From positions 30,318,001 to 30,382,000 of the forward strand of contig NC_088797.1 in NCBI RefSeq assembly GCF_011386835.1: a DNA stretch of 64,000 nucleotides, written 5' to 3'. The notes below the pieces were generated by a model. The model worked only from the letters and a program-made list of their open reading frames with translations. It was not told the origin of the DNA and searched no databases. The translations under genes were made by a program, and so were the position numbers. Of this stretch, positions 1 through 16,240 are shown in pieces. Within the stretch, counting starts at the first letter, position 1. Every line of letters starts with the position of its first letter. This DNA comes from Chrysemys picta bellii. Lineage: Eukaryota.

Positions 1-177
1 TCACCCGCACAGGGAGGTCACAGGGTGCTGTATTGGGTTGCAGTGGGTCATTCCCTTGGGCTGCCATGTTGCATGGTGTCACCCTGCTGCATTAGGTGCT
101 GGCTGGGGTGGGATCCCATTCCCTGCTGAGCTGACACCCCCAACTTTACCTCCGCCCATCACCCCTGTCCCCCTCAC

Positions 178-2302
178 CTTTCAGGGTCTCTGTTAAGATG
201 GCCAGCACCTCCTCCTCCATCAGCCCCAGGAGGGGCAAGGGCACCTGTGATGGGACGGGGTGGCTTTACCACTGGAGGCTTTCAGGTCTGGGAGGGAGGC
301 AGGGCCGGCTCCAGGCACCAGGCACCCAAGCACATGCTTGGGGTGGCACCTGATAAGGGGCGGCGGGGGGAATGCGGCGCGGCATTCCGCAGGGGGGGGG
401 CGCTCCGGAGGCGCGGCGCTGGGGGGGCGGGCTCCGGTTGCGCGGGGCTCGGCGAGGGGGTGGCGCGAGCGCGGCGCTGGAAGGGGGTTCCAGCGGCGCT
501 CGGCGGGGGGTGGGGGCGGGCTCCGGCAGCGCTCGGCGGGGGGCGTCGCGGGGCTCGGCGCTCGGGGGGGTTCTGGCGGTGCTCGGCGGGGGGGCGGCGT
601 GGCGCTCGGCTGGGGGCGGGGGCGGTGCGGCACTCGACGGGGGGGCTGGGGGGGCGGCGCTTTTTTTGCTGCTTGGGGCAGCAAAAAAGCTAGAGCCGGC
701 CCTGGAGGGAGGTATCCCCTCCTCCCTGGCCGTGGAGTGGGGGAGCTTAGTGTCCAGGAGGTGATTCCCTGCAGCCCTGACCCTCCCTGGGGGGATTTCT
801 GAGCACTCATCCACATGATGAGAGCCTCAGTTCTCAGTGGTGCCCTGAGACTGGGGGAGGGCACTGTGAGGAGGTCCTTTCCCCATTGACATAGGACCCA
901 CGTGGGGCATTAGCCTTGTGTGTGTTCCCTGTGGGTGGGTGGAGGGAGCTCAGGGGATCATGAGAGATGCCTAGACTGGGGTTCCCCATGAGGGCCCCAA
1001 ACTGGAGCATCAGAGGTGATGGGGGACTGACTCAGGGGGAGGGAGCCCCATAAGAGGGCAGCAGGAGGGGCTGGGGTGATCAAGGCCGGAAGACAGGCCA
1101 CCATGGGGGGTTAGGGAGATTGTGCGGGACACTCTAGGGGCTCAGGGTAGAGGTATTGAGAGGTAGTCAGAGGAGGCTGGGGGCAGGTGCACTAGTGGGT
1201 CAGGGCTCAGGTCAGATGGACGGGGGCTGGCAGGAAGTTCAGGTCTGGGTAGGGCGGGAGCATACCATCGGAAGGGGGAGAAAGGCCCCATAAACCATGG
1301 GGGGGGGGCAGACTCACAGCTGCTTTGCAGTCCCGCTCGTGTTTCCTCAGCCGGTGCCTGTAAGATTGATTCTGGACCAGTGATGATGCGCAGAGAGCGT
1401 GAGATGGGAACAAACAGTGTCATGCACACCCTGACTGCCTGGAACCTCCCAATGCCCCCTGCCACCCACCCCCACCTTGAACCCCACTGTGATTGCCTGG
1501 GACCACCCTATGCCCCCTGCTCCCCACATCCACCCAGCACCCCCACCCTGACTGTCTGGGACCATCCTACACCCCCTGCCGCCCACCCCCACCCTGCACT
1601 CCATCCTGACTGCCTGGGACCATCCAATGCCCCCCATCCCGCACCCAGCACCCCATCCTGACTGCCTGGGACCAACCAATGCCCCCTGCTCCCCACCCCC
1701 ACCCTGCATCCACCCTGACTCCCTGAGACCACTCAATGCCCTGCCCCCACCCCTGCTCCCTAGCTATCCCCACCCTAGCTATCCTGGGCTTCCTCCCCAG
1801 CAGAGAAAGCTGAGAGGTGAAGGGCAAGAGGCCTGGGGGAGGGCCAGGCCAGGCTGTTTCCAGGCTCTCTGCGTTAAGCTTAGCTTCCCCATCCTACCAG
1901 GGGCTCTGTAATGCTGGATTCCAGTGGACTCACTGGCTTGCTTGGAGCAGATCCCCCCAGCCATGTCACTCCCAAGGAGCAAAGGCTCTGCCAGGAGTCT
2001 GAACTCGCTGGGACTGGCTGTGGAGCCTCAGAGGGTGCTGGAGCCCAGAGGCCCAGTCCTGGGCGCAGAGCCGCTGGACTTGCCCTGGTGAAATGCTGAG
2101 CCCAGGGTCTGACAAATAATAGGGCTCCTCCCAAAGGGACGGTAAGAGTATCTACAGATCCGAGATGAGGGGGTCTGGCTGTACCCACCTGTGTTAGCTG
2201 GTCCACGTGGTAACCCCGCTGGTGTGCCAGTCTCCAGTGGCTGATGCGACTCCCTATGGTCCATACAGTGCTGCCCATGCCTGAGGGGGCAGAGTGACTG
2301 AG
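178..2302 (-). CDS. CATSPERZ: CatSper-zeta (TEX40)-like gene, two internal coding exons; gene continues out of the window to the left
   Basis: Exon 244-178 (cag|GTG...AAA G|gtgag) encodes VPLPLLGLMEEEVLAILTETLK. Exon ~2302-2189 (aag|CTC...CAG|gtgggt) ends RISHWRLAHQRGYHVDQLTQ. Joined in phase 0, they resemble recalled human TEX40 ...HMPHRAYWAEQQSR|LPLPLMELMENEALEILTKALRS. Position and strand downstream of KCNK4 match human. The acceptor at 2302 and a further candidate exon (2838-2772) are tentative. Confidence 0.7.
300..704. mobile_element. hAT-type MITE
   Basis: TIRs CAGGGCCGGCTC(C/T)AG at both ends; perfect 8-bp TSD GAGGGAGG (292-299, 705-712); GC-rich internal tandem repeats. Confidence 0.9.
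1420..1790. repeat. Degenerate C-rich minisatellite
   Basis: Recurrent GACTGCCTGGGACC...AATGCCCCC units. Confidence 0.7.
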
Positions 2303-3207
2303 CTTGAGGTAGCCGGGGGGGAGGGGAGGGCTCAGTCTATAACCCCCACCCACCACAGATCCAAAAGCACACAGGTATCCCTCGCCTGGTGCTGAGATGC
2401 AGCCACCTCTGGGGTGGAGAGCGGGGGCTGTTTACACTGGGATTCCTCCCCCCATGACTCACCTGAGAGGGTGGTGCGTGACTCCTGCTGGGCGAGATGG
2501 GCTGAGGTCTCTAAGGCTTCAGCAGCAGGCCCAGGTTCCTGGTGGGAGGAATCCCTTTAGAGCAATTGGGGGCAGCCCAGATGCCCCCTAACTCCATCCC
2601 CAGGCCTTCCCCTCCTCCTGTGGCTTTGCACCCCTGGCATCTAAGAGGCGGCTTCCTTTCCCACCCCCTCCCCCACAGGCAGCCCCTTCCTTGGAGTTGG
2701 GGAGGGGAGTGTGCAGGGCAGATGCCCAGATCCCACTGCCCCCCAGCCCTCCATCCCCCAGTCACTCCTACCTCCTGACAGGCACTGTCTGGTTCTTCTG
2801 GGTAATCATGGGGTGGAGGGGAGGTGCCCCTGGATGACCTGCGGTGGGAAGGGCATCCTGGTGAGAGGAGAGTATCCCCCGCCCCTCTCCAGATCAGATC
2901 AATGGGCCCGCCTGTCTTCCCCTCTCCCTGCCCAGGAGCAGACCTGTGGGCCCATCCAATCCGGTATCTCCCTCCCCCAGCTCCAGGCCAGACTGTGTTC
3001 CTATGTGGGGGGTGACTGGAGCCCTGGAGTGGAAATTCCTTTAGCACGGAACAGCTAAAAGCTTCTGTGAGGGGGGTGGATTCCATTAGGGGCATGAGAG
3101 CAGAGTCCCCTGGGGGGCATGGAGATGGTGGGGGGATGGAATGGGGAAAGCAGCATCCCTGAGGCAGGTAGGGAACTGGGATGGAGAGGCTGCTGCTGCC
3201 CCACAGG

Positions 3208-3430
3208 CAGGGCCGGCTCCAGGGTTTTGGCTGCCCCAAGTGGCGCAAAAAAAAAAAAAAAAAAGCCGCGATCGTGATCTGCGGCGGCAATTCGGCGGGA
3301 GGCCCTTCGCTCCGAGTGGGAGTGAGGGACCGTCCGCTGAATTGCCACCGAATAGCTGGATGTGCCGCCCCTCTCCGGAGTGGCCACCCCAAGCACCTGC
3401 TTGGCAAGCTGGTGCCTGGAGCCGGCCCTG
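3208..3430. mobile_element. hAT-type MITE, same family as 300-704, opposite orientation
   Basis: TIRs CAGGGCCGGCTCCAG / CTGGAGCCGGCCCTG; perfect 8-bp TSD CCCACAGG (3200-3207, 3431-3438). Confidence 0.9.
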
Positions 3431-4309
3431 CCCACAGGGCAGATCAACCCCCACCCAATGAGGCTGAGCTGTCTGCCCCCCTCCCCAAGGGTCCCTGACT
3501 CCTGGGCATGACACAGTCTAGTTGTGACCCCCCTGACCCAGCCATGTCCCCCAAGGACAATTTTCCCATGGATCCAGTGTTACATATTAACCCCCCTTCC
3601 CCAACTCTGTCCCTCCACCCCCAGTCACTAGAGGTGGAGAGGCCCAGATGCCAACCCCACCACTCCACTCTTACCCCTCAGCAGCGTCCATCATCTGTTC
3701 CCCCTGCTCCAGCGCTTTCTCCTGCAACAACAGAGTGGCTTAAAACAGACTCAGCTGCAACCCTTTCAGTGACACCCCAGAGAACCCCAGTCCCTGTCCC
3801 AACACTGTGGTGACCCCCCAGGAACCCCAGTCTCTGTTCCCCACTCTGCAGTGACACCTGCCAGCACCCCACATCGGTATTGGCAACATACAGGGATACC
3901 CAGTATTAGCCTGCTCCTAATATGGGGATGACATTGTAGAGGATTGGGCACCTCCGAGCCACTAACTAAGACCACTCGTCCCCCCTCCGCACACCCCAGT
4001 CCCATCCCCTACCTCCTGGGCAGTGCTGGGGTCAGGGGAGAGGCTCCACGCAGACCTGCAGAGAGAGGCAGGGCTTAGCAGGAGCATCACGGATTTACCG
4101 GGGTGCACTGTGCTGGCGAGCATGTCCAGGAATGCCCTGCGGGCGTGCCAGGCCATGGGGTTAGGGTGAGCACCCCTACTCCAGCATGCCTAGGCAGGGT
4201 CCTGTGCTCTCCAGCGCCCCATGTGTCTCTGTATCTCCTCCTCCTTTCCCCTCCAGAGCCTCGCTCTCTGCCCCCTGGCCTGGGCAGCCAGATTCTTAAT
4301 CCAGCGACC

Positions 4310-4810
4310 TAGGAACATAGGGCTGGAAGGAACCTTCTGGGCTACTGAGTCTGGGTCCTGCTCTTGCAGCCAACCTGTTACAGGATCCTGGTTGGAAACT
4401 TACCCAGCTCCATCCTCAGGCCGGTTGGGGTGTTTGCCCACCACTCCTCCTACTGGGAGGCTGCTCCAGACCATCCCTCCTCTGCTGGGCACAAACCTTC
4501 TTCTCACATTCAGCCTCAGTGGATTCCTGGCCAGGTTATCCCCCATTTGTTCTTACGCCAACATTCATCGCTCATAAACCCCACTGTGATCATCCAGTCT
4601 GACCTCTGGCATCACGGGCCATAGGGCTGCCCTGAACTAATTCCCATTTGAACTGGGGCAAATCTGGACTTTGGTGGCCCTTTGCTAGACTGAAGAACCT
4701 TCTGTTATCATGTCTGTTCTCCAGGCAGGTGCCTAGAGACTGGGAGCAAGTTACCTCTTCACCTTCTCTTGGTTAAATTACAGCAACTGAGTCCTATAGT
4801 CTCTCTGTAC
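4310..4810 (-). mobile_element. Decayed CR1 LINE 3' fragment
   Basis: The reverse strand gives a degenerate ORF2 tail (RLNVRRRF...WSSLP) and a CTATGTTCCT-type 3' end; locally lower GC. Confidence 0.65.
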
Positions 4811-6821
4811 AGCATTGTACCGGTAAGGCATCAGGATAAGGCATTATTACCTGACAGCTGCCCCTGAGCCTACATGGAAACATTCCTCCAGATTAAGGCA
4901 GGGTGTAAATTTTAAATGGATTAACTATTCCTGATTAACTGCATATGTGGATGCTCTTGGACCAGGAGCAGAGTGCCTTGTTCCAGATTAGTTTAATCTG
5001 GATTAGGATAATTTGGGCTAAGGCACCCTGATTCTGAAATTAGGGTGTCCACACATGGAGTTAGGAATCATTAATCAGGAATAGCTCCTGAGTAGACAAG
5101 ACTTTGGTGCCCAGGTGCAGCCCTGCGGGGCTCCCAGGTTCGCTCCAGGGCTCTGTTCCTAGGGACAGTTCTTGTTGGTGCTTCCATCCCCAGCCAGAGA
5201 GAGCCGCAGCCATCCCGTCCCCCCTGCCCTGGAGGGGAAAGTAACCCTTTTCTGCCCATGGGATGGCAATCTCAAGGGCATGGGGAAACTGAGTCATACC
5301 TATTGTTCTTACAAATATGGCAGCAATTCCCACATTTTCCACAGGGTGATATCACACCCCCACCCTGGGTTTAGTCCAGTATCCTCCCCCACCCCAGCTA
5401 ACCATGCAGCCCTGTACCCCATGCCTTTGGGGTGATATTCCCAGCATCCTCTGCTCTCACCATCTGCGCAATTCCATCTCGCCATCCAATTCCATTCCTG
5501 CCTTGCCCTGCAATGCACCAGGAAGTGATTAATGGGGTGCCTCTCTCTCACAGCTCCTTTGCTGGAAGGGGGTTATCCAGAGGACTGGAGCTCTCCCAGA
5601 TGCCACCCCTCTGTGAATTGGGGCCCAGCTTTCCCAGACACCCTCCTTGAAATTGAGACCCAGAGCCCCTTCCTGAATGGGGACCTCATGCCCACAGATT
5701 CCTGCCCTTGAAACCAGGACCAGTGCTCCAGATGCACCCCCCCTTGAAATCAGGATCCAGTGACCCGACAGGCCCCCCCCCGAACTGAGACATAGTGCCC
5801 CCACATGCCTTCCTTTCCCTGTTGCATCCTCCATTGCGCCCTCCCAACCAGACAGATTTTGGGGATGTCACCTCACATGTCCTGTTACCTGCTCTGTGTC
5901 CGGCTCATCTCCACTCTTCATGATGTACCAGGGAACTGGGTGAGCTCAGTGCCTGAGACGCCGGGGGAGGGGAAGTGTCAGAGCTAGCAGCCCCCACCCA
6001 ATCCCCCCCTTTTAGCCCCCCCATGCCCTTGGTACCCAATCATCCCCACCCCAGTACTCCCATTGAGCCCCCACATCCTTCATGCCTCTTGCAGCCCAGT
6101 CACCCCTCTTGACATCTGCCTATCCTCCACACATCCCTGCTAACCCACCAAACCCAGCCACACACCTCTGCCCCCCATTTACTCCTCCACTCCCCCTCTC
6201 ATCAGACCCCCACCTACTTTGTGCCCCCCATCACCCTTCCAGTATGGGGCACAAAGAGAAGCTGGAGTTTGGGGGGGTGAGAGACCACAATGACCATGCA
6301 CCCCCCCAAAAGGAAAGGATGGACTCACAGACACCCCACTCAGACCAGGACCCCGTGGTGCCCTGCGGTGAAGCCATGGCAACAGGAGAACCCTGCTGGG
6401 CAACAGTCTCCAGGCCCCCACATCCCATCCCAGGGACTCTAGAATCCCTCACTTGCCCCCAGCAGAGCTGGGGGAGGAGGAGACTCACCCCCCAAGGTCC
6501 CCAATCCCCCACACCATGCCTTGCACAGGTCCCCTGGGGGTGGAGGACCCCTGGGACGGGTGACACCCCCCACTCTGTGGCCCCACCTCCATCATGCTCC
6601 ACTTACTTCCACTCCCAGCTCCCCTTCTCCACTGCCCCCCTACCCTGGTTCCTGTTCCCCATCAAACCGCCACAGCCCCTTGCCTCTGAACCCCGCTACA
6701 CCTCTTCCATGCCCCCCCTCCTGGGCTGGTGCCTCCTGAGCCCTCCCTCCCTCAGGCACTGTGCCAGCTACCCCCACCCTGGACAGACACACAGATGCGG
6801 TGTCTCTCATTCAGATTTTGG

Positions 6822-7686: not shown

Positions 7687-10600
7687 CTAGACCGCCTCAC
7701 CCTTGTGGCGAGTGCGGCTCAGCAGGTCCATAGGCAGGCCGGGGGGCTGGCCGTGGGTGTGGCGGGTACGCAGGCGGCGGAGTTGGCGGGGGCGCTTGGC
7801 CTGCAGCCCCCCTTCAGTGGGCGCCTCGCTCTGGGTGTCGGAGCTCTCATCGATGAAGGCCAGGTTCTCCCCCATGTAGTCTATAGGGCGCAGGCCACCC
7901 CCCGCTGAGGCGGCCATGTTGCGGGCGTTGAGCTGCGCCACCTGCAGGGCGGTGCTGGGAGAGGGGAGCTCCGGGCGAGGCAAGGGAGGTGGTGGAGAAG
8001 GCGTGGCAGGTGGAAGCTCCGGGGGCATAGGGGAGGGTGGGTGTCCCTTCAGCGTCCCCACTTTCTGAAGCTTCTCAGGCAGCCCCATGCCCGTCACCCG
8101 CAGCTGGGCCGTCACATTCCCTGTCCAGCTGGCAGCCTGCGCGGTGAGGCCCCCCATCTGTAGGTTGAGAGGGGAATCAGGGACAGGCAGGGAAATCTCC
8201 CACTGATCCCACCGCATACATCACTGAGCCCCCCCACATCCCTCCACTGATTGCCTCAACATACACCCCAGCCCCCTCAGCCTGCAGGGTGAGACCCCCC
8301 CAACATCTGTGGGGAAAGTGGGGGGTCAGGGAACCCATCCAAGCCCTTCCACTGACCCCCCTCCACTTCCACCCTGACCCCCACATACTTACTCCTCCCC
8401 ACCCCATCCCTTCCCACTGACATGCCCCCTCTCCACATGAACCACTCCTCCCTTCCCCCACCCATCCACTCTGCTGGATTGGGGGGTGTCAGACTGACCC
8501 CCCCATCCACTCTCTCACCTATGGGCACGCCCTGGGGTCTGTGTACAGGATGGGGGGAGGCTCTTTTGGAGGGGGGTGCATGCTAGGGTGTGTGTGCAGG
8601 GTGGGTACATAGCCTTTGTGCACCAGGACAGGACCCGCCAGTGGGTGTATCTTGTGGGGGTGGTGTGGAGCAGTGACAGAGTCCACAGGGGGATGCAGGG
8701 GCGTGGGAGGGGTCAGATGGAGGGGTCGGTTGGGGGGTGGGGAAGACCCATCTCAGCCCATGTGTGCCGGGTCAGCACCCCCAGCAAGTTGTCAATGTGG
8801 GGGATGTGGGGTCCTTTGAGGGGTTGGAAGGGGTGGTGGTTATGAAGGGGTCTGTAGTGGGGTACCAACCCTGGCATGTGTATGCTGGGACAGTACTCGC
8901 AGCTAGTTGGGGGTGCCGTGGGGGGGTCATAGGGATGGGGTGGGGACACCACAGGGGGATGCAAAGTCTGTGGGAGGATGCAAAGGGGTGTGGGAGGGCA
9001 GGGGATAGTGGGAGTCTGTGGGGAGTTGGAGAGGTGGGGTGGGGGACAGTGAGGGGGTTAGAGTGGTGAGGGGGATAGGAGGTCTGTGGGTGACAGGAGG
9101 AGACAGTGGGGAGTCCATGGGGGGATGCAAAGGGGAGGCAGTAAGGGGGATGGAGGGGCAAGACAGTGTGGGGGTTCATACGGGGAGCTGGAGGGGTGGG
9201 GGGCAGGAGGCAGTGGGGGTTCTGTGGGGGGGTTGGAGGGGCAGGATGATGGAAAGTAGGGGGGTTAGAGAAGTGGTGGGCAGAGGAGCACAGCAGAGGA
9301 GAGTCCGTCAGGGGTCCATGAGAGGATGCAAAAGGGGGCAGTGAGTGGGTCAGAGGGGCAGGGTAGTGGGGGTTCCGTGGGAGGGTAAGGGGCAGGATGG
9401 ATGGCAAGGAGGGGATCTGAGGGATGGGGGGAAGTGAGGGGATCAGAGAGGCAGGGTGGGGGAAGTGCGGGGTACCAACCTCGGCCCGCGTGCGACGGGA
9501 CAACACCCGCAGCCAGTTGCCAATCATGGTGAGGATGGAGGCGAAGTAGGCCAGGCCCAGCAGGATCCAGAACCAGACCAGGGGCTTGTACCAGGGGTGC
9601 TTGTCCCCCATACCATCACCTGGGAGGGGAGATGCTGAGACACTGCCCCCGAAACACACAACCTCCTCACTGCACCGGCTGTGCCTTCCCTGCCCCTCTC
9701 CCCCATCACTCCATTGCCCCCAATCCTCCTGCCAGCCCCTCTCCACCCGCTTCCCTCTGCCTCTTCCCTGTCCTCCTTTCCCTGTACCAGGCCCCCCTGG
9801 CCACATAAGAATGGCCAATGGTCCATCTAGACCACTATCTTGTCTTCTGACAGTAGCCCATACCGGAGCTTCAGGGAGAGTATACAGAACTGGGCAATTT
9901 GGAGAGATCCACCTGTCTGCCCCTCCTGGCTTCTGGCAGTTGGAGGGTTAAGATCGCCCTAAGCATGGGGTACATCCATCCCTGACCATCTTAGCCAATA
10001 GCCAGCGATGGACCTATTTTCCATGAACTTATCTAATTTTTTTTTTAACCCAGTTATACTTTTGGCCTTCACAACATCTCATGAGAGGTTGACTGTGCCT
10101 TGTGTGAAGAAGTATTTCCTCTTGTTTGTATTAAACTTGCTCCCCATTAATTTCAATCAGTGACCCCCTGGTTTTTGTATTGTGTGAAAGGGTAAATAAG
10201 ACTTCTCTATTTTTCTACATCAGTCATGATTTTGTAGACCTCTATCATATCCCCCCCCTTGATTGTCTTTTTTCTAAGCTGAACAGTCCTAATATTTTTA
10301 GACTCTCCTCATATGGAAGTTATTCCATACCCTTGATCACCTCTGTTGTCCTTTTCTGAATGTTTTCCAGTTCCACTATATATCCTTTTTGAGATGGGGC
10401 AACCAGAACTGGATACAGGATTCAAGGTGTGGGCACATCATGGATTTATATAGCGGCATTATAATAATTTTCTGTCTTATTTTCTATCCTTCCTACCATT
10501 TTGTTAGCCTTTCTGACCACTGCTGCACATTGAGCTGAAGTTTTCAGACTACCCACAATAACTCCAAGATCTCATTCTTGAGTGGCAACATCTAATTTAG

Positions 10601-13600
10601 ACCTCATCATTTTGTATGTGTAGCTAGGATTATGTTTCCCAGTGTGCATTACTTTGCACTTACCAACGCTGAATTTCATCTCCCATTGTCTTGCCCACTC
10701 ATGCAGTTTCGTGAGATCCCTTTGTAACTCTTCACAGTCTGCTTTAGACTCAACTATCTTAAGTAATTTTTTATCATCTGCAAACTTTGCCATTTCACTG
10801 TTCACTCCCCTTTTCCAGATCATTAGTAAATATGTTGAATCGCACAAGTCCCAGTCCCTCGGGGGACCCCGATATTTACCTCTCTCCATTCTGAAAACTG
10901 ACCATTTATTCCTACCCTTTGTTTCCTATCTTTAAACCAGTTACTGATCCACGAGAGAGCCTTTTTTCTAATCCTATGACTACTTTTTTCTTAAGAGCCT
11001 TTAGTGAGAGACCTTGTCAAAGGCTTTCTGAAAATCCAAGTACACTATATTGACTAGATCACCCTTATCCACATGCTTGTTGACCCCCTCAAAGAATTCT
11101 TGAGTCATGAGCCACAACTTCCCTTTACAAAAGCTGTGTTGACTCTTCTCCCACAAAGTGTGTTTATCAGTGTTAACTGATAATTCCATTTTTTTTTACT
11201 ATAGTTTCTACCAATTTGCCCAACACTGAAGTTAGGCTAACTGGCCTGTAATTGCCAGGATCCCCTCTGGAGCCTTTTTTTAAAAATCGGCATTACATTA
11301 AGCTATCCTCCAGCCATCTGGCACAGAGGCTTGTTTCAGTGATGGATTACGTACTACAGTTAGTAGTTCTGCCATTTCATGTTTGAATTCCTCCAGAACT
11401 CTTGGGTGATTCCAGCTGGTCCTGGTGACTTATTACGGTTTCATTTATCAATGTGTTCTAAAATCTCTTCCACTGACACATCTGTGTAATAGCACTTCAG
11501 ATGTCTCACCCAAAAAGAATAGCTCTGATGGGGGTATCTCCCCCACATCCTCTGGAGTGAAGACTGATGCAAAGAATCCTTTTAGCGTCTCTGCAATGGC
11601 CTTGTCTTCCTTGAGTGCTCCTTTAACACCTTTGTGGTCTGGCCCCACTGCCTGTCTGACATGCTTCCTGCTTGTGATGTACTTAAAAAAAAATGCTTAG
11701 TTTTTGCGTCTTTAGCAAGTTGCTTCTCAAGTTCTTTCTTGGCCTGTCTTATTACACTTGGACCCTTAACCAGCCTGAGTTTGTTGGAACTCATTGGAAT
11801 TTGATTTCCAAAGTTTAAAGGGTACTTTTTTGCTTCTAACAGCCTCCAATATTCTGCTGTTGAGCTATGGTGGTATTCTTTTGGTCCTCGTATTGTCTTT
11901 TCTGATTTGGGGTATACATTCACTATGACCCTGTATTATGGCATTTTTAAATAGTTTCCACTGCTTGCAGGCATTTTACCCTTGTGACAGCTCCTTTTAA
12001 TTTCCATCTAACAAGTGTCCTCATTTTGTGTAGTTCCCCTTTTTAAAGTTAAATTTTACTGTAGTGGGATTTTTTGTGCGTGTATTATCTCCCTACAGAG
12101 ATGCTAAATTTAATTACATTATGGTCCCTATTACTGAGCAGTCCTGCTATAATTAGCTCTTGGACTACATCCTCTGCTCCACTTAGGACATCACACCTCA
12201 CCACCCACCTTCCCTGTCATCTGCTACTCACACCTCCCACAGTGGGACCCACCAGGGGCTCTCTCACACTAACCCTCCCACACACACTAGGCTGCTCCCT
12301 GCTCCCCTTTCCTTGTCCCCCATGAAGCCCAGCTTCCACTGAGCCCCCCCTCCTGCCCACCACCAACAGCCTCCCCCATGTAGATCCTCCCATGCCTACC
12401 TGCCACATAGTCCCCGAAGCCGATGGTAGTCAGCGTGATGACCACAAAGTAGACAGATTCCAGCAGGGTCCAGCCCTCCACTCGCTGGAACACAATGGTG
12501 GGGATGGTGACGAAAAGGATGCAGCCAATGAGGATGAAGAGCAGGGCGGAGAGAACCCGCACAATGGTGGGACTCACCTGCCATTTCTGGGAGGGAGGAG
12601 ACAGCATCAGGGGAGGACCAGGGGAAAGCCCCCTCCCCACAGACTGTGCCAGCCCCCCCCCCACACGCACACTCTGACCCCCGAGAGGGGAACCCCCACC
12701 ACCACCACACACACCAACCCCTTTGCCCCTCACATACACTAATTCCTCCCAACACACACACACTCACTCCTTTGCCCCCCTCACACAGCCCCCTGGCAGT
12801 AGAGGTGCCACCTGGCCGGGTTTTGTACTGCTTTGCCAGGTAGAAGATTTTCTGTGCTGGGTTTTTTCACTTGAGACATGCCAAAGCACTCTACAATCCA
12901 TGCCTTGTAGTTTGGACTGTGGCCCGTGTTAGGATGAGGTAAGAAAAATGATAAAAGACATCCAGGCAGTGTGCAGCGGCAGTCAACAAAGCAAACAGGA
13001 TGTTAGGAATCATTAAAAAAGGGATAGAGACTAAGACAGAGAATATCTTATAAATATAAATCCATGGTACACCCACATCTTGAATACTGCATACAGATGT
13101 GGTCTCCTCATCTCAAAAAAGATATACTGGTATTAGAAAAGGTTTAGAGAAGGGCAACGAAAATTATTAGGGGTTTGGAATGGGTCCCATACGAGGAGAG
13201 ATTAAAGACGCTAGGACTCTTTGTCTTGGAAAAGAGGAGACTAAGGGGGGGATATGATAGAGGTCTATAAAATCATGAGTGGTGCGGAGAAAGTGAATAA
13301 GGAAAAGTTATTTACTTGTTCCCATAATATTAGAACTAGGGGTCACCAAATGAAATTAATGGGCAGCAGGTTTAAAACAAATAAAAGGAAGTTCTTCTTC
13401 ACACAGCGCACAGTCAACCTGTGGAACTCCTTGCCTGAGGAGGTTGTGAAGGCTAGGATTATAACAGGGTTTAAAAGAGAACTAGATAAATTCATGGAGG
13501 TTAAGTCCATTAATGACTATTAGCCAGGATGGGTAAGGAATGGTGTCCCTAGCCTCTGTTTGTCAGAGGGTGGAGATGGATGGCAGGAGAGAGATCACTT

Positions 13601-16240
13601 GATCATTACCTGTTAGGTTCACTCCCTCTGGGGCACCTGGCATTGGCCACTGTCGGTAGGATACTGGGCTGGATGGACCTTTGGTCTGACCCAGTATGGC
13701 CATTCTTATGTTCTTATGTAAAATAACATAAAAATATACAGATTGCGTGGGGGTTGTTTGTCTGTTTTGTAAAACGGTTCTCTAATGCATTCTAGTAATA
13801 CCTATAATGGGCACTAGGACCCTTTTTCTTAACGGGGGGCGTGGCTAGTGGCCGGGCTCTGGTGGTGGTGTGACCAGTGGACCGCATTTTGTTGTTGGTT
13901 GATGGGGTGACAGCCAGGGGCTGTGATTTGTTAGGTGGCAGGGTGGCCAGAGGCTGGGTTTTCTGCACCTTGGAGGTGGCCACCCTACTCAGGAGGGGAA
14001 CTGTGCCACACAACTCTGGGGAAAGGACCCTCCCCCCACCTCCGGGAAGGGAATCCCTGGAACACACGGGGTGGGGGCAGAGAGTGTTGGGGGAGGAAAC
14101 AGACTGGGGAGCCCCCTGGGACAGGAGCCCCAAACCAAGCTGGCCCCATAAATGGGAGAGATCTAGTGCTGGGAAGCAGAGCCAGGCTCCCGGTCCCACT
14201 ATCTGACCCCTCCTCTGCAGCACCCCTGCTCTGCACAGAGCCCGGAGAGTGGGTGCAGGGGTATGTGGGGGGACTGCTGGGGGAGCACAGGAGGCTGGGA
14301 GACCAAGGAGGACAGTGGAAGCCACTGTAGCTGCTGGACATGAGGGGCTGGAGCGGGGGAACCACTGACGACCCTGGAGCTGCTGGGTACATGGGCCCTG
14401 GCTCTGTGGGGACAGGGGGACAGGGACTCAGAGGGCACTCACCAGGAAGATATCCTCCACCTTGCCGATGGCCTGGCGCAGCGAGAAGCCCAAGTGGTCG
14501 CCCACCCCAGCCAGCAGCATCCCGAAGAGCGGGATCCCAACTAGAGCGTAGAAGATGCAGAAGAGACGCCCCCCCTCTGTCTTGGGGGATGTGTTACCGA
14601 ACCCTGGCGGGGGGGAGAGCATGGAGTCAGCAGGGAGGGGGCAGAATTGATGCCCCTTAATCCTGAACTGCAGCTCCCTGCTATCGCAGCCCTGAGCAAC
14701 CCCCCACCTCTGCCCTCAATCCCTACCCGCAGCACACACACATCCCACGGGCCAGTACCGATGGTGGTGATGATGGTGCCAGCGAAGAAGAAGGCGCTGC
14801 CCATGTCCCAGTTGGTGCTGGTGCCATTGGTGCTGTTGGCTGTGGGGTCAGCACCGGCACCCATGGTGTCTCTGACATGCTGGGGGAGACGGGAAGGGGT
14901 TAATACTAGTGGTTTTGGGTTCCCCCCCATCATGCAGCTCCTGCTGTCCCCGCCCCACATCCTTACCCCCGAACTTGACTTTCCCAGTACACATTTGCCA
15001 ACCCTTTCCTGACTGCCCCATGGCTGTTGTCCCCAGACACCTGACTGCCCCCCACCCCACTTTCCCCTTCCTCTCCCCATCTCCCCCTGGAAACCCTCCA
15101 TCAGCCTCACCCCACCCCATTACCCCCCAAATCACCCCAACCTGCATCTCCTTCTGCCCCACCCCAATGACACCTGACCCCCCCCCACCCTTCCCATGCC
15201 TCCAGCACTGTCCTTCCCCATCTACCCCTTATAACCATCCCCTCCTGCCCCCCCATTGACAACTCTGATTTCGGCCAATCTCAGGAGTCCAGCCTGGCCC
15301 AAGGGTGGGGGTGAAAAGCCCCTGTGATTGGCTGCCCTTCTCCCACTTTCTCCACCTCCTGGGAAGGACAGCCAATCAGGGATGCTGCAGGAGGCAGGTG
15401 ATGCTCTCCCCCCCCACAAGAGATATCAGCTAGAGAAGTGGGAGTGGGGGGAGAGAAGGAGCAGGGGACAGGAGGGAAGTGGGGAGGAAAGGAGAAAGAG
15501 CCCAGCAGCTTAGGGCAGCCCTGCTCCCCCCTCCAGCCCTGCCCCTCCCAGACTGGGGGAGGGTGACAAGCCCCATGGAGCTGCAAGAGGAGGGGGGCAG
15601 ATGTAGGAGGCCAGGGAGGGGATTAATTTCTGGACTGGGGGGGGGACAGAATTAATTCATTAGGATTTTAGGAAAAGCTGGAGGCTCTGCACGATCCCTG
15701 AGTCAGCGAGAGCCTCTTTCTCTTTAGGAACTGGCAGCGCTGTAACTGAGGGGACTTTCAGTGGTGGCCATAGCACTTCCCATCACCCCCACCAATGCCT
15801 GCTCCCCCCTCCCCCATGCCCCACTGCTGCTCCCCTCTTTCCCCCATCCACCACACCCCGTCCCCATTCACGCCTCACACCTGCCCCCTCCATGCCCCTC
15901 TCCCATCATCTCACCAGGATGAGTGTGTCCAGCTCCTGGCTGGGCACGCAGCGGTATCTCTGCAGAAACTGCTCACGGGCGACCTGCAGTGCCTCCTGCT
16001 GGCGGCTCTCATGCGGCTGCTCCAGCAGGCGGAAGACGAAGGCGCCGCTCACCAGGTAGACCAGCACCACGGTCAGCAGGGCCAGCACCGTAGCCCGTCG
16101 CATCACGCTGCCCTGCCCACTACGGGGTGTCTGCCCCACCCCCGCCCCACTCAGGATTGACTCCTTAGACGAGTAGCAGACAGGCAGTGCCCCATGGTTC
16201 TCGGCAGGGTGGGGGGCTGTGGAGGTCAGGGGGGAGCTCA
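7687..16240 (-). CDS. KCNK4: Two-pore-domain K+ channel TRAAK (K2P4.1)
   Basis: Phase-consistent exons 16240-15915, 14879-14759, 14603-14443, 12586-12400, 9619-9480, 8157-7687. Pore signatures TTIGFG (split across two exons) and TTIGFGDY; C-terminal [15 protein letters not shown] is KCNK4-specific. The ATG matching the human start (MRRATVL) is at 16103 (422 aa); 468 aa if read from the exon-2 acceptor. Confidence 0.97.
8560..9440. repeat. G/A-rich degenerate tandem repeat in the last KCNK4 intron
   Basis: Recurrent GGGGGATGCAAA/GGGTCTGTGGG motifs; explains the Pro/His-rich tail of ORF 8772-9818. Confidence 0.65.
9804..12230 (-). mobile_element. CR1 LINE, 5'-truncated, decayed ORF2 (RT domain)
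   Basis: ORF fragments [22 protein letters not shown] and [14 protein letters not shown]; 3' end GGCCATTCTTATG at 9804-9816; AT-rich island. Confidence 0.95.
12930..13718 (+). mobile_element. CR1 LINE 3' fragment
   Basis: ORF 13254-13523 (MIEVYKIM...RTRGHQMKL...[11 protein letters not shown]); ends in the ATTCTTATGTTCTTATGT tail. Confidence 0.95.

Follow-up and report, generated by a model that had tools for sequence, protein, structure and literature searches.

Is CatSper-zeta (CATSPERZ, also TEX40), a subunit of the sperm Ca2+ channel CatSper, confined to mammals? The literature has repeatedly said so. Zeta was called 'mammalian-specific' in 2017 (PMC5362262), stated to exist only in mammals in 2018 (10.1101/459487), 'Unique to mammals' in 2019 (PMC6679542), and 'conserved only in mammals' and 'Specific to Therian Mammals' in 2021 (PMC8147001), and a co-evolution screen missed it, its orthogroup being seemingly mammal-restricted (PMC10523455). 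CatSper papers rest adaptive accounts on this mammal-only zeta. The question is raised anew by a stretch of 64,000 nucleotides from the painted turtle Chrysemys picta bellii (NC_088797.1, positions 30,318,001 to 30,382,000; the window), in which two exons between positions 178 and 2838 had been proposed, from the letters alone, as a diverged reptile zeta (the original prediction). Our analysis bears this proposal out. The gene is very probably the turtle CATSPERZ orthologue, located just downstream of KCNK4 on the minus strand; orthology is concluded from profile matches in both directions, a conserved gene order, spliced transcripts, and purifying selection on the core exons.

Searches were done exon by exon, with database proteins of related turtles serving as full-length proxies. 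A mammal profile was built from six NCBI-named CATSPERZ proteins (aardvark, tree shrew, two echidna isoforms, bilby, and Gracilinanus). Searched against all 2055 stop-to-stop open reading frames (ORFs) of the window, this profile gives a single match, to ORF 149..265 on the minus strand, with an expect value (E) of 7.2e-9. The matched ORF contains E9, the second of the two proposed exons, which is the most conserved part of the zeta family. In the opposite direction, a profile of five full-length turtle proteins matches two mouse CatSper-zeta chains in PDB, 9ubw_K (E 2e-7) and 7eeb_K (E 3.6e-7), the next match having E 0.94. Across 75 columns, an hhalign alignment of the turtle and mammal profiles has E 1.4e-17 and a probability of 98.9%. 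Among 1.84 billion representative sequences, the turtle profile finds echidna CATSPERZ at E 1.8e-10, as well as marsupial and eutherian CATSPERZ. In relatives, the match to zeta continues from E9 into the next exon. The similarity to the C-terminal conserved region of mammalian zeta, by which a protein is counted as CATSPERZ, is significant.

The exon chain was defined by contigs of four runs (X1, X5, X6, and X7), placed on positions 1-6000 of the window. X1 and X5 are labelled organism A, X7 organism C, and X6 organism B; X1, X5, and X7 come from three different studies. That the runs are RNA is a guess, for which the loss of canonical introns at high depth argues. Specifically, X1, X5, and X7 contain contigs without eight introns, each CT..AC on the plus strand and hence GT..AG on the minus strand, and the spliced contigs have a depth of 117-360 versus 2-13 for intron pieces. 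The eight joints are 5889/5507, 5461/4055, 4013/3721, 3675/2838, 2772/2538, 2463/2280, 2189/1371, and 1318/244. The features of the gene in the window are as follows.

6329..6357, minus strand: 3' end of an upstream non-coding exon of the 5' untranslated region (5'UTR), the loose end of X1 and X7 contigs past 5952, uniquely placed; GTGAGT is next.
5889..5952, minus strand: E1, with ATG at 5921 (MKSGDEPDTEQ); tblastn of turtle proteins, joint with E2 (X1, X5, X7), AG/GT.
5461..5507, minus strand: E2, GKAGMELDGEMELRR; joints with E1 and E3, borders.
4013..4055, minus strand: E3, SAWSLSPDPSTAQE; joints with E2 and E4, borders.
3675..3721, minus strand: E4, EKALEQGEQMMDAAE; joints with E3 and E5, borders.
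2772..2838, minus strand: E5, SSRGTSPPPHDYPEEPDSACQE, at the top limit of the originally proposed stretch; joints with E4 and E6, borders.
2463..2538, minus strand: E6, EPGPAAEALETSAHLAQQESRTTLS; joints with E5 and E7 (the latter in 4/4 runs), borders.
2189..2280, minus strand: E7, MGSTVWTIGSRISHWRLAHQRGYHVDQLTQ, the first of the two originally proposed exons, ending in HQRGYHVDQLTQ with donor GTGGGT; joints, alignment, borders, structure model.
1318..1371, minus strand: E8, NQSYRHRLRKHERDCKAA, 54 nucleotides, in frame; joints with E7 and E9 (X1, X5, X7).
1357, minus strand: alternative acceptor inside E8, making the exon 14 nucleotides shorter and shifting the frame; joint 1357/2189, X6 only, depth 14.
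178..244, minus strand: E9, VPLPLLGLMEEEVLAILTETLK plus 1 nucleotide, 67 nucleotides; joint with E8, mammal-profile match, preceded by CACAG and followed by GTGAGG.

The window thus holds nine coding exons with 175 codons, all of them open, with canonical AG/GT borders and agreeing phases. In the ORF listing of the window, E9 appears only as a 32-residue ORF starting with GTG. The contigs run past 178 into sequence to the left of the window, the reverse complement of which reads, in phase, DYRRHLGARH. This is the start of the last exon in the proteins of Mauremys, Chelydra, Emydura, and Pelodiscus, so that the last coding exon (E10) sits beyond the left window edge, as had been anticipated, and is expected to read DYRRHLGARHPLTH. 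Taken together, the minus-strand turtle gene very probably comprises eleven exons or more, and the stretch originally considered in the window corresponds to its 3' two thirds.

The N-terminal half of turtle zeta is acidic, Ser/Pro-rich, and fast-evolving, while the C-terminal half is conserved. An AlphaFold2 (AF2) model of the Emydura protein, computed with a 48-sequence family alignment, has a mean predicted local distance difference test score (pLDDT) of 79, with values above 90 for residues 61-130, and contains four helices, which match E7, E8, E9, and E10. The N-terminal exons evolve far faster than E7-E9. For E7-E9, the ratio of non-synonymous to synonymous rates (dN/dS), taken as an exon-by-exon sum with small counts on an ungapped alignment, is 0.27 when compared with Pelodiscus and 0.32 when compared with Lepidochelys. 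E9 has six synonymous changes versus one non-synonymous change, and its identity among turtles is 95-100%.

Several observations weigh against this assignment or its functional extension. The runs are presumed RNA and of undisclosed tissue, so that testis specificity is a prediction. The runs with the productive form (X1, X5, X7) belong to organisms A and C, not to organism B, to which four of the five runs covering most of the stretch are assigned. In X6, the sole organism-B run placed, the 1357 acceptor with its frame shift is the only form present, at a low depth of 14. A Foldseek search of the AF2 monomer against PDB gives nothing below E 0.3 and ranks CatSper-zeta 9ubw_K only 35th, at E 3.4; a helical, partner-dependent zeta is not recognisable by fold alone. 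The IQ-like motif that binds EFCAB9 is in the last exon, outside the window, and relatives have M-E or V-E there. The spliced transcripts are those of related turtles, and expression in testis or sperm is what we infer.

The observations on X6 bear on the best-surviving alternative, namely that the gene is a true homologue that is decaying or mostly non-productive in the painted turtle and no longer serves CatSper. In addition to the 1357/2189 joint, X6 has no 244/1318 joint, the RefSeq model of the painted turtle (P0002) is without E9 and E10, and Mauremys mutica and Pelodiscus both have annotated isoforms with a shifted frame. The 1357-acceptor form is also found as a metaclust protein (P0001) and as the M. 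mutica RefSeq isoform P0003. However, the nine coding exons in the window all have an open frame and undamaged splice sites, dN/dS is about 0.3 for E7-E9, the depth of X6 is low here (14 versus 117-360) and its tissue undisclosed, and two other organisms with near-identical exons have the productive form in abundance in their runs. We therefore regard decay as improbable.

A second alternative concerns the splicing of the proposed exons, which the original prediction had joined directly, 2189 to 244. Both exons exist, on the minus strand and with canonical borders; the direct join does not stand, because joints 2189/1371 and 1318/244 place the 54-nucleotide E8 between them in X1, X5, and X7. 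E7 might still be spliced to E9, in the main isoform or in another regular one that stays in frame, since 54 nucleotides are 18 codons and skipping of E8 keeps the frame. The direct join is absent among the best-supported 15 of 20 joints. Against such an isoform, the high-depth X1, X5, and X7 contigs all contain E8, and E8 is present in all full-length turtle, lizard, alligator, fish, and shark proteins, those of Mauremys, Chelydra, Pelodiscus, and Emydura included. It is conserved, and mammals too have kept a segment that corresponds to it. Regular skipping of E8 is thus very unlikely.

The 22-residue peptide of E9 alone has two PDB matches among 177,635 sequences, both mouse CatSper-zeta chains, at E 0.6-0.9. 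The E7 peptide alone finds in PDB only a chance match to NBR1 (E 1.2), and a Pfam scan of the exon peptides and the surrounding ORF finds no family, only a chance FitA-like match at E 0.21. A chance resemblance of a short leucine- and glutamate-rich peptide, with no zeta gene here, could appeal to the E-values of E9 by itself and to the lack of a Pfam family to compare with, but it is refuted by profile E-values of 1e-7 to 1e-17, by the extension of the match into the next exon in relatives, and by gene order and splicing that agree with zeta, and is hardly conceivable.

The neighbourhood agrees with the CATSPERZ assignment. One further feature was located upstream of the gene.

7687..16184, minus strand, limits approximate: exons of KCNK4, a TRAAK-type two-pore-domain K+ (K2P) channel; ORFs with K2P pore motifs.

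For the exon at 16184..15909, KCNK4 chains give E 1.2e-17, a better match than KCNK10 or KCNK2, so KCNK4 does lie upstream on the same strand, as originally proposed. In Pelodiscus and Lepidochelys, an Ion_trans_2 K2P channel, zeta, and a gene for a 411-residue zf-C4/Hormone_recep protein (ESRRA-like) follow each other on one strand. We take the human order to be KCNK4-CATSPERZ-ESRRA. The order expected of zeta is thus found, with KCNK4 upstream here and the ESRRA-like gene downstream in the two other turtles. For therians, the synteny of zeta has been stated to be conserved (PMC8147001). In gar (Lepisosteus oculatus), there is no K2P channel within 10 kb of the zeta homologue, the neighbours being a TGF-beta gene and two unknowns; gar does not keep the gene order of tetrapods, and synteny is therefore of no help beyond tetrapods.

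The zeta 5'UTR exon (6329-6357) ends about 1.3 kb below the point where the coding sequence of KCNK4 stops. Within the gene, the intron between E7 and E8 holds a 58-nucleotide tandem array of about 5.8 copies with 76% matches (1427-1753). Two copies of an interspersed repeat are present in inverted orientation, at 298-704 and 3208-3432; the former includes a GC-rich tandem array of 28-33-nucleotide units (388-660). Both copies have very high contig depth in 4/4 runs, which indicates that the repeat family is widely transcribed.

The original prediction had left it undecided whether databases already annotate zeta outside mammals. They do. NCBI uses the name CATSPERZ in the turtles Pelodiscus sinensis, Emydura macquarii, and Carettochelys insculpta, the lizard Podarcis muralis, the snakes Erythrolamprus reginae and Vipera latastei, the kiwi Apteryx mantelli, and the frog Ascaphus truei; a coelacanth protein is named 'testis-expressed sequence 40 protein-like' (TEX40-like). 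Our literature search for reports of non-mammalian zeta found none among the papers covered, and the databases are ahead of the papers. The painted-turtle RefSeq model (LOC101935587) is called 'uncharacterized' and matches the window at 100% over 81 residues, read-through intron included. Specifically, intron sequence is kept before E5, and the model runs out in the intron after E8. The painted-turtle gene is an unnamed, mis-modelled member of a family already recognised in reptile databases, and its annotation needs two more exons and a name. Squamate RefSeq homologues of zeta (P0017, P0081, P0039, P0074) are fused to long repetitive N-termini or to neighbouring genes; the fused models are misnamed 'neurofilament medium polypeptide-like', 'cilia- and flagella-associated protein 251-like', or 'glyoxal reductase-like'.

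How far back does zeta go? The original prediction dated it to at least the amniote ancestor, which holds and is too cautious. Searched against the 1.84 billion representatives, the turtle profile has 67 matches at E <= 1e-3, with named matches in the following groups outside turtles and mammals.

Lizards and gecko (Sceloporus, Podarcis, Hemicordylus, Gekko): E 1e-42 to 5e-36.
Crocodilian (alligator): E 3e-27.
Ray-finned fish (gar): E 7.5e-24.
Ray-finned fish (anchovy, hake, blackfish, shad): E about 1e-22 to 1e-17.
Ray-finned fish (crucian carp, sucker): E about 1e-15.
Ray-finned fish (sturgeon): E 3e-13.
Ray-finned fish (mudminnow): E 7e-7.
Shark (horn shark): E 8e-19.
Frog (Ascaphus): E 6e-13.
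Coelacanth (Latimeria): E 8e-10.
Tunicates (Ciona, Styela): E 3e-8 and 3e-6.
Soft coral (Xenia): E 4e-4, weak.
Starfish (Asterias): E 4e-4, weak.

Aligned by hhalign with the mammal-only profile, the tunicate, starfish, and coral set matches with 97.2% probability and E 3.7e-11, the set having been picked with a related profile and thus not being fully independent. A profile search with this invertebrate set finds, beyond the set, only more tunicates and unnamed metagenome proteins. Judged by these sequence matches, the origin of zeta is far older than amniotes; a vertebrate-wide origin is nearly certain, and a metazoan-wide origin, on weaker scores, is likely. CatSper pore subunits are listed for Chrysemys picta bellii, Alosa, Lepisosteus, Latimeria, Apteryx, and Carassius (PMC11289002 supplement), the same lineages or genera in which zeta matches are found, so zeta probably occurs where the channel does. 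The internally fertilising frog Ascaphus truei carries a RefSeq CATSPERZ (XP_075440478.1, P0031); amphibians have been reported to be without CatSper1-4 (PMC11289002).

Together, the gene in turtle, its transcripts with their introns removed, and the broad range of homologues show that the apparent restriction of zeta to mammals is a product of fast sequence divergence and poor gene models. A turtle zeta is at odds with what papers have repeatedly claimed and argues for an origin much further back. On balance, we favour a history in which zeta is an ancient CatSper-associated subunit, present from cnidarians and echinoderms through tunicates, sharks, ray-finned fishes, coelacanth, a frog, and sauropsids to mammals and tracking the patchy distribution of the channel, with mammals in a derived state that has lost the E7 helix and shortened the next one. 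If the ancient origin is true, accounts that tie zeta and EFCAB9 to mammalian internal fertilisation and hyperactivation would need revision.

By homology with mouse CatSper-zeta, the partner of the E9 and E10 helices is most likely EFCAB9, a calmodulin-like sensor of Ca2+ and pH, along with ARMH2 (PMC12638846). Zeta would hold the EFCAB9 sensor under the pore, at the cytosolic face of CatSper in the sperm flagellum, and the sensor so placed would tune pH-dependent Ca2+ entry. The E7 helix may give an extra contact that mammals gave up. In mouse, the IQ-like motif L174-Q175 is needed for EFCAB9 binding (PMC8147001). The turtle-profile match spans mouse residues 135-185, including this site, and L174-Q175 aligns to M-E or V-E in turtle relatives, with the hydrophobic residue kept and Q replaced by E. 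The helix around this position is conserved and confidently predicted by AF2. A role of turtle zeta in EFCAB9 binding and in the channel would follow the mouse system, and the non-mammalian sequences let the field test whether EFCAB9-zeta gating is ancestral.

Mammalian CATSPERZ (mouse 7eeb_K and 9ubw_K; echidna, bilby, aardvark, and tree shrew) and turtle zeta are both small and have a variable N-terminal half. They have in common about 50-75 C-terminal residues, with the pattern [LV]PLPL..LME.E.L.ILT..L..YR..[IL]G..H.LT..[LMV]...[IL]E.L. Other than that, three differences are observed besides the one at L174-Q175. First, in the family alignment the turtle E7 helix, with W..G..IS.W[RK].AH.RGYH.DQLTQ, is conserved in lineages from shark to turtle, and mammals do not have it; a conserved helix lost by mammals is thereby indicated. 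Second, turtle E8 is the counterpart of the mammalian PHRAYWAEQQNR segment and is four residues longer. An equivalence of the mammalian HRAYWAEQQ segment with the HQRGYHVDQLTQ end of E7, which had been proposed, was rejected, as alignments put HRAYWAEQQ opposite E8. Third, the C-terminal tail is Gly/Ser/Pro-rich in turtle, in contrast to the basic KKRRNKRL of mammals. Sauropsid and frog CATSPERZ and the coelacanth TEX40-like protein, on the other hand, have the same exon-by-exon protein layout from E7 to E10 as the turtle gene; compared with the RefSeq-named sauropsid CATSPERZ, what sets the painted-turtle locus apart is that it is unnamed and that its model stops after E8.

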